From the sequence record NC_030884.1: a stretch of DNA of 32,995 bases. One strand, written 5' to 3'. How positions within the stretch are numbered: the stretch's first letter is position 1; each line of letters begins with the position of its first letter. The notes beneath the pieces were generated by a model. That model did no database searches and had not been told where the DNA came from. It saw only the letters and a list, made by a program, of their open reading frames with translations. The translations under genes and the position numbers were made by a program. This document shows, one piece after another, positions 1 to 31,632 of this stretch.

Positions 1-86
1 AAAAAATGAAAAAAACTCCCATTTCCTTTTTACTACTCTACAATTATAAAACATTAAGAAGGTATTAGGAGTTTTTTTCATTTTTT
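1..86. other. Terminal imperfect palindrome / putative hairpin telomere
   Basis: 1..19 pairs perfectly with 68..86; inner 24 positions pair in register with 15 Watson-Crick pairs and 9 mismatches around a central AATT (42..45). Confidence 0.75.
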
Positions 87-1425: not shown

Positions 1426-1510
1426 CTAATTAGCTAAGATTATGCTTAGTTTTTTTCAGGATTGTGATACTAATTCTAAAGGTTGAAAAAATTGAGAGGT
1501 GAAAAAATAA

Positions 1511-6664: not shown

Positions 6665-6835
6665 TTAACCGCCTCGTTTTTGCAAATACTCTCTTATTGC
6701 TTCTTCTATAGCTTGAGTTAATTGAAGATTATTTTTTGCACAGTATACTTTCAGTCTAGTTTTCAAATCCTTGTCCATATAAATTCCAAATACTGCTTTT
6801 TGCTTCTTTTTTTGACTCTGTTCTTGAGTTTGCAT
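6665..6835 (-). CDS. svtR: Ribbon-helix-helix repressor SvtR (56 aa from ATG 6835)
   Basis: MQTQEQSQKKKQKAVFGIYMDKDLKTRLKVYCAKNNLQLTQAIEEAIREYLQKRGG matches recalled SIRV1 ORF56b; RHH pattern. Confidence 0.9.
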   Translation of the reverse strand: MQTQEQSQKKKQKAVFGIYMDKDLKTRLKVYCAKNNLQLTQAIEEAIREYLQKRGG

Positions 6836-6859
6836 TTTTCCTCGTTTGTTCATTTTGAT

Positions 6860-6882
6860 TTATGACATTTTTATATCTTTTT
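6860..6882 (-). promoter_or_regulatory. GTC-type promoter of svtR, embedded in the rep 3' end
   Basis: AAAAAGATATAAAAATGTCATAA identical to 7665..7687 and 10093..10115. Confidence 0.75.
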
Positions 6883-7219
6883 TTGTCTTTATCATATATT
6901 TATATACATTTTTTATATCACTTATATTTTTTGGAATTAATTCGATTCTTATATCAGTATGAGGAGGCATATGTTTGTGAACTCTAGAATAATCCAGTTT
7001 TTTATTCGTGAAAACTAAAATATGATAATGAAGACCATTTGAATTTTTTGTGGTTTCCTTTATAGAAAATACATGTGAATTTTTGTCATGATTATAAATA
7101 TAACTACGAAATTTTTTAAAAATTTTTTCAGTATCTCCATATTTATAATTAGTTGCAATAGTAATGAAATAAGTATAAGTATAAGAAAAATGAAAATTTA
7201 AAACTTTTTTCAAATCCAC
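6860..7219 (-). CDS. rep: HUH-family Rep endonuclease (119 aa from GTG 7219)
   Basis: Motif 1 FITI, motif 2 LHYHIL, motif 3 YKYMIK; matches recalled SIRV ORF119; the 192-aa track call is an over-extension. Confidence 0.9.
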   Translation of the reverse strand: MDLKKVLNFHFSYTYTYFITIATNYKYGDTEKIFKKFRSYIYNHDKNSHVFSIKETTKNSNGLHYHILVFTNKKLDYSRVHKHMPPHTDIRIELIPKNISDIKNVYKYMIKTKKDIKMS

Positions 7220-7320
7220 AATATTACGTGCGGAAATGACGTTTAAAAACTTATGTCGACAGAAAGGCGAAAGGTTTAAAAATGTATAATCACAAATTTT
7301 TATAAGCGAGGTGGCTAGAG

Positions 7321-7587
7321 ATCCAGCGTAGAAAGTATATATGCCTAAGAGTTCCAAGTGAAGTAAAACAAATTTTTTACGAAAAAAGAGAAGAGATAAA
7401 AAAACAATTAGATGATATTTTAGAAGGAAAAAGAACACTAGAAATTAAAGAAACTGCAGATTTATATGATGAAAAAGTATTCTTTACAGTAGATATGTTA
7501 TATTATGCGAAATTGCAAGAATTATCAAAAAAATATAAAAAACCATTATCGAAAATAATCAGATCTGTATTCTTTAATCTAAGTTAA
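7321..7587 (+). CDS. Cryptic tandem RHH-like protein (~88 aa) lacking a canonical start codon
   Basis: Stop-free frame 7306..7587: IQRRKYICLRVPSEVKQIFYEKREEIKKQLDDILEG..EKVFFTVDMLYYAKLQELSKKYKKPLSKIIRSVFFNLS; SD-like GAGGTG 7308..7313; T-rich tract after stop. Confidence 0.6.
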   Translation: MQRRKYICLRVPSEVKQIFYEKREEIKKQLDDILEGKRTLEIKETADLYDEKVFFTVDMLYYAKLQELSKKYKKPLSKIIRSVFFNLS

Positions 7588-7612
7588 ATCTTTTTTTTCT
7601 TTTTCTTTTTTA
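7588..7612 (+). terminator. T-rich terminator after the cryptic RHH ORF
   Basis: ATCTTTTTTTTCTTTTTCTTTTTT immediately after TAA 7587. Confidence 0.6.
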
Positions 7613-7664
7613 TTTCTCATATTATATATTGGAAATTCTATATTTCTCTTCATATTATGAAATT

Positions 7665-7687
7665 AAAAAGATATAAAAATGTCATAA
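7665..7687 (+). promoter_or_regulatory. GTC-type promoter of the SSB-ATPase-nuclease operon
   Basis: TATA-like ATATAAAAAT followed by GTC, the rudiviral promoter trinucleotide as recalled from SIRV transcription work. Confidence 0.75.
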
Positions 7688-7714
7688 TTAAAAGATATTT
7701 TTAGAGGGAGAAAC

Positions 7715-8110
7715 ATGGCGTCCCTTAAACAAATACTGGATGAATTAGGAAAACAAGCTAAAGAACAAAACAAGATAGCTAGTAGAATTTTAAAGATAAA
7801 GGGAATAAAAAGAATTGTTGTACAATTAAATGCGGTTCCACAGAATGGTTCAATAAGATATTCAATGACAATCCATAGTCAAAACAATTTCAGGAAACAA
7901 ATTGGAATAACGCCACAAGACGCAGAAGATTTAAAATTGATTGCAGAGTTTCTAGAGAAATATGCAGACTTTCTTAATGAATATGTAAAGTTTACTCCAA
8001 GGAATAATAGCACAGTTCAAGAAGAAGAACTAGACATGGAGCAACAAGAAGAAAAAGAAGAAAAACCTAGTACGAAAAGCAGAAAGAAGAACGTAGAGGA
8101 GGAGTTTTAA
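7715..8110 (+). CDS. Single-stranded DNA-binding protein (SIRV ORF131 family)
   Basis: Matches recalled SIRV2 gp17 family; acidic low-complexity C-tail ending VEEEF typical of SSB partner-binding tails; first gene of the operon. Confidence 0.8.
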   Translation: MASLKQILDELGKQAKEQNKIASRILKIKGIKRIVVQLNAVPQNGSIRYSMTIHSQNNFRKQIGITPQDAEDLKLIAEFLEKYADFLNEYVKFTPRNNSTVQEEELDMEQQEEKEEKPSTKSRKKNVEEEF

Positions 8111-8135: not shown

Positions 8136-9458
8136 ATGAATGAAACTACACAACAGAATCTTCAATTATTTGAAAAGTTAAAAAGTCATTCTTTTTTTTA
8201 TAATCCAAGAGATAATGAAAGAATTTTAAGTCTAATTCTTGGCGAAAAACAAGTTGAAGAAAATAAGAAAATTGAGATTTTGAAAGCTTACAAGAGAGGA
8301 ATTGATTCTCAATATTTTAGTGCTAATTTGCCATATTATAACGAAATAAAATTTATAAGTAAAATTACTGGATTTAAAGTTAAAGATGATCTAGTAATTG
8401 CAAAATTTCAAAATGGTTTTACTGGAGATTTTGATCCACATGAAATTGCTGATAATCCAGATGATTTTTATAATCTTATTTCTTCATATATGTTTGTAAA
8501 GATCAAAAAAGGATCAGAAAACTGGTTTATTGATGAAATATTTTCTATAGAACCGCCTAATAATTTTGAAATTGCAAAAGAAATTCTAGAAGAAGCTGAT
8601 AAACAACATTTAACTTATGCTATTCTATTGCAAGCTTTTGGATATGATTCACAAAAGATGGATTCAGATGATATTTTCTTAACTTTACCACGATTATTCC
8701 CACTTTTCAAATCTCCAATTACTAAAAGACAGATAAACACAATAGAAATTTCAAATAGAGGTACTGGAAAAACTACAACATTTATGATTTTACAAGAAGT
8801 TTTCAATTTTCGTTATTATACAGAACCTCCAACTTATGCAAATTTGATCTATGATGCTAGAAATAATATGTACGGTTCAGTATTTTTATCAAACGGATTA
8901 ATTTTTGACGAAATACAAACTTGGAAAGATGGATATGCAGTTAAAGAATTAAATTCTATAAATTCTACATTATCTACTGGAATTGAAAATTGCATTTGGA
9001 CAAGAGGAGCAGGTACAGAAAGTAAATCTGCTACAATTCAAAAATGTATTCCAATTATTTATGCTGGAAATCCTTTCTCTTTAACTTTAGATAAATATCA
9101 AACTCCAGATATAGAATCATATTTACAACAATATGAAATTTTTACGCCGGCAATTTTAGATAGAATTCATATTATTCAATTAGCAATTAAGAAAACTTAT
9201 GATAAAATAATAAATGCTAGAGTTCTTTATCCTTCAATTCTAAGAGCATTAGTGGAATTAATTCAGGAAAAAATTAACAGAACTACAAATTATGCGGACT
9301 GTGGAAATCTAGAAAGTAGAAGAAAAGAACAATCTATAGATATTCAAATACTTTTACAAGCTTTAGATATAGATTTGCAAATTGGAAAAGTTTCAAATGA
9401 AGAAGTATGTAATAAAATTGTAAATCTAATGAGATTTAGCAATTTAGGAGGATGGTGA
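8136..9458 (+). CDS. AAA+/P-loop ATPase (SIRV ORF436/440; annealing/helicase-like)
   Basis: Walker A SNRGTGKT, Walker B LIFDE, sensor AGNP, arginine-finger-like ILDRI. Confidence 0.88.
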
Positions 9459-10075
9459 AAATGAATTATGAAGATCATATAAAAGAAAGTTTTAAAGTTA
9501 AATATCCTAGTGATACAATTTTTCCAAGTGAAGTTGGTATTTGTTATAGAAAAAGCTATCTTGCTAGAAATATTGAATTTGAGAGAGGAATAAATGAAAT
9601 TTATCTTGATCTAGGAGAACAATATCATGAGAGAATTGAACAATATTTTAAAGAAAAATTGAATTGTCAAACTGAAGTTGAAATTAAAGATGAAGTTGAG
9701 GGAATGAAAATTAGCGGTAGAATTGATATAATTTGTAATAATGACTTATTGGAAATTAAAACAATTAGTTATAATTATTTCCAAGTAAAAGAATATCATT
9801 TATACCAAGTCGCATTATATTATCATATTTTGAAAAAGCAAAATTATCAAATCAATAATGTATATATTATATATTTAAATAGAAACACTAGAGAAGTTAA
9901 GCAATTTAAAATTGATGAAAAAGTTTTAGAAAATTATTATCAAAAAGTTATTGAATGGATAAAGAAATTTAAAGAATATCTAAAAGAAACAGATTATAAA
10001 AAAGTTCCAGGAGTTAATAATTATATCTGTAAATCTTGTGAGTTTAAGCAAAAATGCATTATATCACTTTTTTAA
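9452..10075 (+). CDS. Cas4-like RecB-family nuclease
   Basis: [31 protein letters not shown] and C-terminal [10 protein letters not shown] Fe-S cysteines. Confidence 0.92.
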
Positions 10076-31485: not shown

Positions 31486-31632
31486 TTATTTTTTCACCTC
31501 CTTGATTTTTCAACCTTTACAATTACTATCACAAAACTGAAAAAAACTAAGCATAATCTTAGCTAATTAGGAGAAAAATAAAAATTCTAAAAAGGAGAAT
31601 TAGAACTTACAAATAAAAAAACAAAACTTAAC

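Follow-up and report, generated by a model that had tools for sequence, protein, structure and literature searches.

An unannotated frame between the Rep and ssDNA-binding genes

The genome of Sulfolobus islandicus rudivirus 3 (SIRV3; NC_030884.1/KX712143.1), the 32,995 bp of which make up the window analysed here, contains a gap of approximately 500 bp between the gene for the HUH endonuclease Rep (ORF117/119c) and the gene for a single-stranded DNA (ssDNA)-binding protein (ORF131). No coding sequence (CDS) is annotated in this gap in SIRV1, SIRV2, or SIRV3. On the plus strand, however, a reading frame runs without a stop from 7306 to 7587, comprising 93 sense codons and a terminal TAA (7585-7587), with a further TAA immediately 5' to it at 7303-7305. 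The only in-frame ATG, GTG, or TTG is the ATG at 7495, none being found before codon 63, and it would give an open reading frame (ORF) of only 30 amino acids (7495..7587). The frame and its single late ATG had both been correctly described in an original prediction made from the letters of the sequence, which proposed an overlooked gene, divergent from rep, for a protein with tandem ribbon-helix-helix (RHH) units, and which named the ATC at 7321 as a candidate for its non-canonical start.

The comparative data presented below back that proposal. We conclude that the frame is very probably a real translated gene in SIRV3. The fuller account that we develop here, in which positions 7321..7587 (+) are a functional protein-coding gene for an 88-residue tandem-RHH protein, orthologous to the gene of about 90 codons that lies between the Rep and ssDNA-binding genes of other rudiviruses, and having the start, transcript, fold, and role outlined in the following sections, we consider probable on balance. 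The lack of an ATG, GTG, or TTG start accounts for its having been missed by annotation.

The open frame alone is weak evidence, because such runs arise by chance: when the 498-nt gap was dinucleotide-shuffled, 1.9% of the shuffles contained a stop-free run of at least 93 codons, and across the six frames of the whole genome about one such run is expected. It is conservation that gives the frame its significance.

The frame is under purifying selection in three Icelandic genomes

SIRV1, SIRV2, and SIRV3 are Icerudiviruses, the Icelandic clade, and are represented by separate genome records. Across 661 bases around the frame, the sequence is 88.7% identical to SIRV1 and 87.0% identical to SIRV2 (100% to the SIRV3 record itself), and the three genomes align over 521 columns without a gap. 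In this alignment the frame is open in all three, with no indels and no stops, and the ratios of non-synonymous to synonymous substitution (dN/dS, Nei-Gojobori) for the three pairs are 0.125, 0.339, and 0.141, whereas the other two frames contain 5-11 stops and give values of 0.45-3. The pairs differ at 16-20 amino acids where 31-34 differences are expected under neutrality, and when the observed substitutions were placed at random, none of 5000 simulations reached the observed value; under the same model the probability of encountering no stop is 0.001-0.12 per comparison.

The constraint exceeds the 30-residue tail, since dN/dS is also low (0.08-0.38) in the 162 nt (7333-7494) that lie upstream of the first ATG. 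Low ratios in both parts of the frame argue that it is translated, and as the canonical start is missing from all three genomes, selection must have acted after the ATG was lost. The original prediction had named interruption of the frame in relatives and absence of purifying selection as evidence that would count against a gene; in SIRV1, SIRV2, and SIRV3 the frame is intact and the ratios lie at 0.12-0.34.

Annotated relatives in other rudiviruses

The gene as such is not new, as its family is already known and annotated in other rudiviruses; what is new is its presence in SIRV1, SIRV2, and SIRV3, where it is held by selection without a canonical start. The Yellowstone Usarudiviruses SIRV4-11 encode at the same place a 90-amino-acid 'hypothetical protein' beginning MKKQRNKYI(E/G)LRIP (for example SIRV5 gp10, YP_009362620.1), and SBRV1 encodes there ORF12-94 (YP_010771852.1), annotated as 'ribbon-helix-helix domain'. 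The SIRV3 protein is 53-59% identical to those of SIRV4-11 (53-57% by tblastn) and 31% identical to that of SBRV1, and phmmer E-values against members of the family range from 4.6e-23 to 1.7e-7. The family corresponds to PHROG 11115, which has no annotated function and which is matched over 86 of the 88 residues with an E-value of 3.6e-28. The order of genes is shared as well: the frame is flanked by the divergent HUH Rep gene on one side and the ssDNA-binding gene on the other in SIRV1-3, in SIRV4, 5, 8, 10, and 11, in SBRV1, and in the metagenomic contigs L016 and L017. The orthologues of SIRV4-11 and SBRV1 thus resemble the SIRV3 protein in length, in position beside Rep and a cassette of ssDNA-binding, ATPase, and Cas4-like genes, and in predicted fold (template modelling (TM) scores of 0.79-0.98).

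The relatives differ from the Icelandic copies in how they begin. The syntenic ORFs of SIRV4-11, SBRV1, and metagenomic contigs are 89-94 codons long with ATG starts, and the 51 metagenomic loci, which reduce to 41 distinct variants, start with ATG (GTG in two) five to six codons before a KYI motif, usually at about 29-31 nt past the TATA box, which is the pattern of leaderless transcripts. At that position SIRV3, SIRV1, and SIRV2 have CTA, CTA, and ATA. Examination of the start in rudiviral homologues, as had been proposed, finds ATG or GTG at this place in all other relatives but in none of SIRV1, SIRV2, and SIRV3. The nearest relative with a canonical start, that of L016 (P0001; 71% identity), reads AGGTGGGAC-ATG, that is, a Shine-Dalgarno (SD) sequence, 4 nt, and ATG; this ATG, like that of the Usarudiviruses, aligns with position 7315 of SIRV3. 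Unlike the mostly leaderless-type members of PHROG 11115, and unlike the orthologues of SIRV4-11 and SBRV1, the copies in SIRV1, SIRV2, and SIRV3 are unannotated and lack a canonical start; their SD has been retained or strengthened.

Among 5.8 billion protein clusters just three relatives were retrieved, none from the SIRV1, SIRV2, or SIRV3 locus, and a literature search found no paper naming or analysing the ORF in these viruses. Searches by tblastn with P0007 and P0009, two distant members, found no further members by sequence beyond the Ice-, Usa-, and Japarudiviruses; structural matches suggest counterparts in SSRV1, SMRV1, and MRV1. Among the Yellowstone metagenomic copies, four (L058, L063, L066, and L069) are frameshifted or cut off, and assembly error and real decay in a lineage are both possible causes.

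Predicted fold

An AlphaFold (AF2) monomer model, built on a 10-sequence alignment (pLDDT 92.1, pTM 0.81), consists of a beta-alpha-alpha arrangement repeated twice: strand 4-11 and helices 13-21 and 23-34, a 16-residue linker, then strand 51-58 and helices 59-72 and 76-87. The first unit (residues 4-34, nucleotides 7330..7422) appears in the AF2 model only, with no Pfam match; the second (residues 51-87, 7471..7581) is of canonical RHH form. The RHH_3 profile matches seven of ten family members (best E-value 2.3e-5) and RHH_1 three of ten (best 2e-4), in each case in the C-terminal unit; the SIRV3 protein itself scores 16.6 bits against RHH_3 (E-value 0.0077), below the cut-off of 21.6. Because a strand called by DSSP requires a partner and the monomer model contains just two, these must pair with each other, as they do in an RHH dimer. 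The two RHH-like units read from the sequence, and the intramolecular dimer that AlphaFold was expected to reveal, are thus both present in the predicted structure, and the model makes a single-chain tandem RHH quite likely. The two strands would form the ribbon that reads DNA, and one monomer would then bind DNA as an RHH dimer does.

The best structural matches in the PDB, by Foldseek, reach TMq 0.53-0.66 and are chains of about 110 residues (E and G) in entries 9F0Y-9F12 of the F-plasmid relaxosome. We take these chains most likely to be TraY, a single-chain RHH protein; VirC2 follows among the matches (TMq 0.49). The relaxosome entries contain three copies of TraY (PMC12117103). Like the SIRV3 protein, TraY of the F plasmid and VirC2 of pTi hold the whole fold of an RHH dimer in one polypeptide (PMC12117103), and both TraY and the SIRV3 protein are encoded beside, or work with, an HUH endonuclease, the TraI relaxase in one case and the rudiviral Rep in the other. 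They differ in that TraY and VirC2 are bacterial plasmid proteins without sequence homology to the SIRV3 protein, and the Foldseek E-values are weak. In BFVD the matches include SIRV10 (TM 0.98), the RHH protein of SBRV1 (0.79), a 'putative transcriptional regulator' of SSRV1 (0.72), lipothrixviral RHH proteins (0.60-0.67), and a CopG-domain protein of SMRV1 (0.54).

Closer to rudiviruses, the betalipothrixvirus transcription regulator AvtR (AFV6 gp29, PDB 4HV0) carries two RHH motifs in one chain and binds DNA as a monomer (PMC5569661). It shares with the SIRV3 protein its small size (about 100 amino acids), its origin in a virus of the Ligamenvirales, and a tandem RHH in one chain; it has, however, no detectable sequence similarity and another genomic context, it is not among the 50 best PDB matches by Foldseek, and DNA binding by the SIRV3 protein is a prediction. 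SvtR (SIRV1 ORF56b; SIRV3 gp10, 6665..6853) and the CopG repressors of rolling-circle plasmids are likewise small regulators of RHH fold encoded beside rep (PMC5569661), but these are single RHH units that form homodimers, whereas the SIRV3 protein would consist of two dissimilar units fused in one chain.

Predicted promoter, leader, and terminator

Because the virus infects a crenarchaeon, its promoters are of the type that combines a transcription factor B recognition element (BRE) with a TATA box, and initiation is either leaderless or SD directed. A predicted promoter of this kind lies at 7268..7284 (+), where a purine-rich, BRE-like CGAAAGG is followed by the TATA box TTTAAAAATG (7275-7284), and it is conserved in SIRV1, SIRV2, SIRV3, and L016. 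The string TTTAAAAATGTATAAT that had been called promoter-like is indeed present, but at 7275..7290 rather than 7276..7291, and it is better read as a purine-rich BRE joined to an archaeal TATA box than as a bacterial -10 element (TATAAT). The TATA box at 7275 matches a promoter motif, T[AT]TAAAA[AT]TG, that recurs in approximately 15 copies in the SIRV3 genome, in most cases with TCATAAT after it, and that is equivalent to the 'GTC' motif for which PMC5569661 credits Kessler et al. 2004. Sites of the composite motif T[AT]TAAAA[AT]TGTCATAAT, TATA box plus 'GTC' element, include 2022, 2478, 3906, 7672, 10100, 28521(-), and 6875(-); the copy at the RHH gene lacks the C of GTC.

Distances from the start of the TATA box to the start codon fall at +30..32 in leaderless genes and at +39..50 in leadered ones. 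Since the leaderless-looking genes have their ATG 30-32 nt past the TATA start, transcription would begin at about +30, which places the predicted start of the RHH transcript at 7305..7306 (7275 + 30/31), 2-3 nt before the SD. The distance from the TATA start to the SD, 33 nt, compares with 32 nt for the SD-like motifs that precede ORF131 and the gene at 2069, and the ATC at 7321 stands at +46, inside the +43..+50 range of leadered starts. Folding of 7305-7380 gave no RNA structure (z = +1.1), and a search of 7150-7750 found no Rfam family.

Downstream of the frame, as had been observed, lie T-tracts (T8, T5, and T6, within 7591..7611) that resemble archaeal terminators and at which the transcript probably ends; the T-run directly after the stop is kept in the Ice- and Usarudiviruses and in L016. 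These tracts belong to a 127-nt spacer (7588-7714) between the RHH gene and ORF131 that is 95-96% identical in SIRV1, SIRV2, and SIRV3, compared with 82-86% for the flanking coding and intergenic DNA. The spacer also holds the ORF131 promoter and a conserved 24-amino-acid antisense ORF (MKRNIEFPIYNMR...), and about 26 nt of it are missing from the Usarudiviruses.

The probable start codon

The SD that had been noted as GAGGTG is present as GAGGTGG at 7308..7314 (+) in SIRV3 and as GAGGTGA in SIRV1 and SIRV2, the first six bases being invariant. The heptamer GAGGTGR occurs four times in the SIRV3 genome against 1.17 expected; two of the four occurrences are GAGGTGA heptamers in mirror-image terminal regions, at 1496-1502 (+) and 31494-31500 (-), with no open frame following.

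Two observations delimit the point at which translation can begin. The codon at 7312..7314, TGG in SIRV3, is an in-frame TGA in SIRV1 and SIRV2 and so sets the upstream limit of the coding frame, and differences at 7330 (AGA, AGA, and CGA in SIRV3, SIRV1, and SIRV2) and 7333 (AAG, AAA, and AAA) are synonymous; together they confine initiation to 7315..7330. In the same order of genomes, the codons of this interval read CTA/CTA/ATA, GAG/GAG/GCA, ATC/ATT/ATC, CAG/CAG/CAT, and CGT/AGT/AAA, followed by AGA/AGA/CGA at 7330-7332. Only the third, at 7321..7323, differs from AUG at a single position in every one of the three genomes. It begins 7 nt after GGTG (7310-7313), in line with the spacing to the SD that had been claimed for it, and it is the sole in-frame codon within 6-9 nt of GGTG, the spacing found in nine SD-led SIRV3 genes (a tenth, at 9454, has 3 nt). 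A start here would place three residues ahead of the K of KYI, where relatives have one to five. From this spacing, and from the near-cognate codon shared by three genomes, we lean, with modest confidence, towards SD-directed initiation at AUC 7321 (AUU in SIRV1).

The messenger would accordingly be made from about 7305/7306 under the control of the BRE and TATA box at 7268-7284 and would carry the SD GAGGUGG at its 5' end. The ancestral ATG was lost in the Icelandic clade, and initiation at the near-cognate codon 7 nt past GGUG would yield the 88-residue protein, probably at a low level. That an inefficient AUC start may be of benefit to a regulator is a speculation.

The chief alternative is that translation begins by some unconventional mechanism at the ancestral position 7315 (AUA in SIRV2 and CUA in SIRV3 and SIRV1), or at a different non-cognate codon within 7315-7330. 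This position is aligned with the ATG of L016 and the Usarudiviruses and lies 40 nt past the TATA start, as do the ATGs of several short-leader genes, and the AUA of SIRV2 is near-cognate. Nevertheless, the CUA of the other two genomes has two mismatches to AUG, and 7315 is only 1 nt from GGTG where 6-9 nt is mostly seen elsewhere, which leaves such a start unlikely.

A start at the GUG of 7311, 5-6 nt from the predicted 5' end and hence nearly leaderless, with +1 frameshifting programmed into the first six codons, is still harder to sustain. The GTG is invariant in SIRV1, SIRV2, and SIRV3, but it is one base off the frame and opens a frame of six codons to a TAG at 7329-7331, a short frame that ends in all three genomes (TAG, TAG, and TAA). 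In three other genes, Rep included, a GTG 34-35 nt past the TATA start moreover shares the frame of the ORF. Yet none of the five or six codons can re-pair at the P-site in +1, so that no slippery site is present; the mini-frame is poorly conserved and differs between SIRV2 (GTG AAT AGC AAT CCA TAA) and SIRV1 and SIRV3 (GTG GCT AGA GAT CCA GCG TAG in SIRV3); no RNA structure and no Rfam element was found; and the GTG is adequately accounted for as part of the SD. We therefore judge this route very unlikely.

Read-through from the ATG at 7282 (MYNHKFL-stop) was also considered and, from the aligned sequences, rejected: this ATG falls within the TATA box and precedes the predicted start of transcription, and in SIRV1 and SIRV2 two in-frame stops (TAA and TGA) separate it from the conserved frame. 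An in-frame mini-ORF, ATG-AGG-TGA, is peculiar to SIRV2 (NC_004086, approximately 9459-9467), where it stands exactly at the predicted 5' end of the transcript and overlaps the SD; its ATG codon is ACG in SIRV1 and GCG in SIRV3. In the three genes with an in-frame GTG 34-35 nt past the TATA start, this codon is at 2057, at 2512, and, for Rep, at 7216 (-), which suggests that SIRV3 may commonly use near-leaderless GUG starts and that an internal ATG may in some cases have been annotated as the start.

Initiation at AUU, AUC, or AUA is known from bacteria in the genes infC and pcnB. ORFs of SSV10 have been annotated with CUG, AUU, and AUA starts (PMC6080066), a precedent by annotation alone. These genes share with the SIRV3 gene a near-cognate AUH codon at a canonical distance behind an SD and a regulatory type of product; the SIRV3 start is a prediction from sequence and those of SSV10 are annotations, and the SIRV3 start would be served by the archaeal aIF1/aIF2 machinery, which is reported to discriminate against AUH codons (PMC6237735).

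Evidence for a living gene on the plus strand

The lack of a canonical start could also mean that the gene is dead, or that a sequencing error near GTGG (7311-7314) has created an apparent frameshift, as the original prediction had allowed. GTG 7311 is exactly one base off the frame, every other relative has an ATG or GTG, and some metagenomic variants (L058, L063, L066, and L069) are themselves cut off or frameshifted. But the same offset and the same missing start recur in three separate records that align without gaps, which rules out a sequencing error, and the GTG is off frame in L016 too, which has an ATG of its own. A pseudogene is equally hard to reconcile with dN/dS of 0.12-0.34, with amino-acid change at half the neutral expectation (0 of 5000 simulations), and with the absence of stops and indels where the neutral chance of an open frame is 0.001-0.12 per pair. 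A relic or artefact is thus highly improbable.

Even less likely is that the locus makes a short C-terminal product only, either the 30 residues from ATG 7495, the sole canonical in-frame start, or 78 residues from a GTG present in SIRV1 at the codon equivalent to 7351. That GTG is GTT in SIRV3 and GTA in SIRV2, the region 7333-7494 upstream of ATG 7495 is itself under purifying selection (dN/dS 0.08-0.38), and the 30-residue product would be without both strands and the whole first unit that are conserved across the family.

The annotation of SIRV3 bears on the remaining alternative. The RefSeq CDS gp11 is 192 amino acids long (6860..7438, -) and so runs antisense across part of the RHH frame. 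The HUH Rep gene proper occupies 6860..7216 (-), encodes 118-119 amino acids, and has its true start at GTG 7216, the position at which SIRV1 ORF117 and SIRV2 ORF119c also begin; the Pfam domain 117-like_vir (E-value 7.8e-63, residues 11-111) is complete in the 118-residue version from this GTG, and the rep promoter, of TATA/GTC type, lies at about 7238-7250 (-). The extra 74 codons of gp11, antisense to the RHH gene, are closed in SIRV1 and SIRV2, where the Rep ORF has 117-119 codons, and the gp11 annotation up to 7438 is an over-extended Rep. That the plus frame is a mere shadow of gp11 is hardly credible, for although GenBank and RefSeq place this CDS over 7306-7438 and its minus frame is open in SIRV3, that frame is closed past Rep in SIRV1 and SIRV2, the Rep domain is whole without it, and the pattern of substitution agrees with the plus frame.

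The neighbouring SvtR-like gp10 (6665..6853, -) is annotated as 62 amino acids. Its promoter is at 6875, and its ATG at 6853 is just 22 nt past the TATA start, upstream of the expected transcription start; the ATG at 6835 (+40) would give the 56-residue form known from SIRV1 ORF56b.

Possible roles and what the gene would mean

In every case the RHH gene points away from the HUH Rep gene and in the same direction as the cassette of ssDNA-binding (SSB), ATPase, and Cas4-like genes, and the promoters of rep and of the RHH gene stand back-to-back within about 60 bp. This invariant position and the predicted fold point to two roles. By analogy with CopG, SvtR, and AvtR, the protein may repress or tune the divergent rep and its own promoter; CopG represses or tunes the repB promoter, and SvtR and AvtR act likewise in archaeal viruses. 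Alternatively, as TraY does with TraI, it may serve as an accessory factor that binds and bends DNA for the HUH Rep. An 11-mer search that compared the rep/RHH intergenic region with the remainder of the genome, including the termini, for shared operator-like repeats recovered only the common promoter motif, and a search for operators as repeats gave only low-complexity A/T matches.

A bolder combination is that the Icelandic rudiviruses, the model virus SIRV2 among them, have swapped the ATG of a conserved replication-module gene for an SD-driven AUC or AUU and have maintained it by selection, possibly for a very low dose, and that the protein is more than a repressor, being a TraY-like DNA-bending factor that brings the HUH Rep to the hairpin termini; we think this unlikely.

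Several points weigh against a tandem-RHH gene read from AUC 7321. Its function is argued from fold and gene order only, and the N-terminal RHH unit is supported by the AF2 model alone. An hhalign comparison of the N-terminal with the C-terminal half gave a probability of 0.1% and hence no internal repeat, and searches of PDB sequences with the protein, the family profile, and the half-profiles found no chain at E < 0.1. Foldseek E-values against the PDB are weak (at least 0.3), as is usual for such small folds. With regard to the start, the ATC/ATT codon is found in three genomes only, and its conservation is possibly due to chance, as the codon also reads isoleucine; at the ancestral start position SIRV2 offers another near-cognate codon, AUA; and the closest ATG-bearing relative, L016, has an SD spacer of 4 nt, not 7. 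Finally, the aIF1 of Sulfolobus reportedly selects against non-canonical starts (work cited in PMC6237735), and an AUC or AUU start would consequently be weak.

If the AUC start is real, it would show non-canonical initiation occurring naturally, and conserved, in a crenarchaeal system. Sulfolobales initiation factors are thought to reject near-cognate codons, and a gene that combines a missing ATG, GTG, or TTG with purifying selection would offer a compact and genetically tractable test of near-cognate initiation in this order, as well as a caution for gene callers limited to canonical starts. SIRV2 is the main laboratory model among rudiviruses, and the gene list on which its transcriptomics, knock-out series, and 'core genome' are based is without this gene, as are the records of SIRV1 and SIRV3, the wrongly extended Rep CDS covering part of it in the latter. 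The rudiviral replication module (Rep, SSB, annealing ATPase, and Cas4-like nuclease) would gain a candidate DNA-binding regulator or accessory factor, and a gene seemingly absent from the Icelandic annotations would become common to Icelandic, North American, and Japanese rudiviruses.

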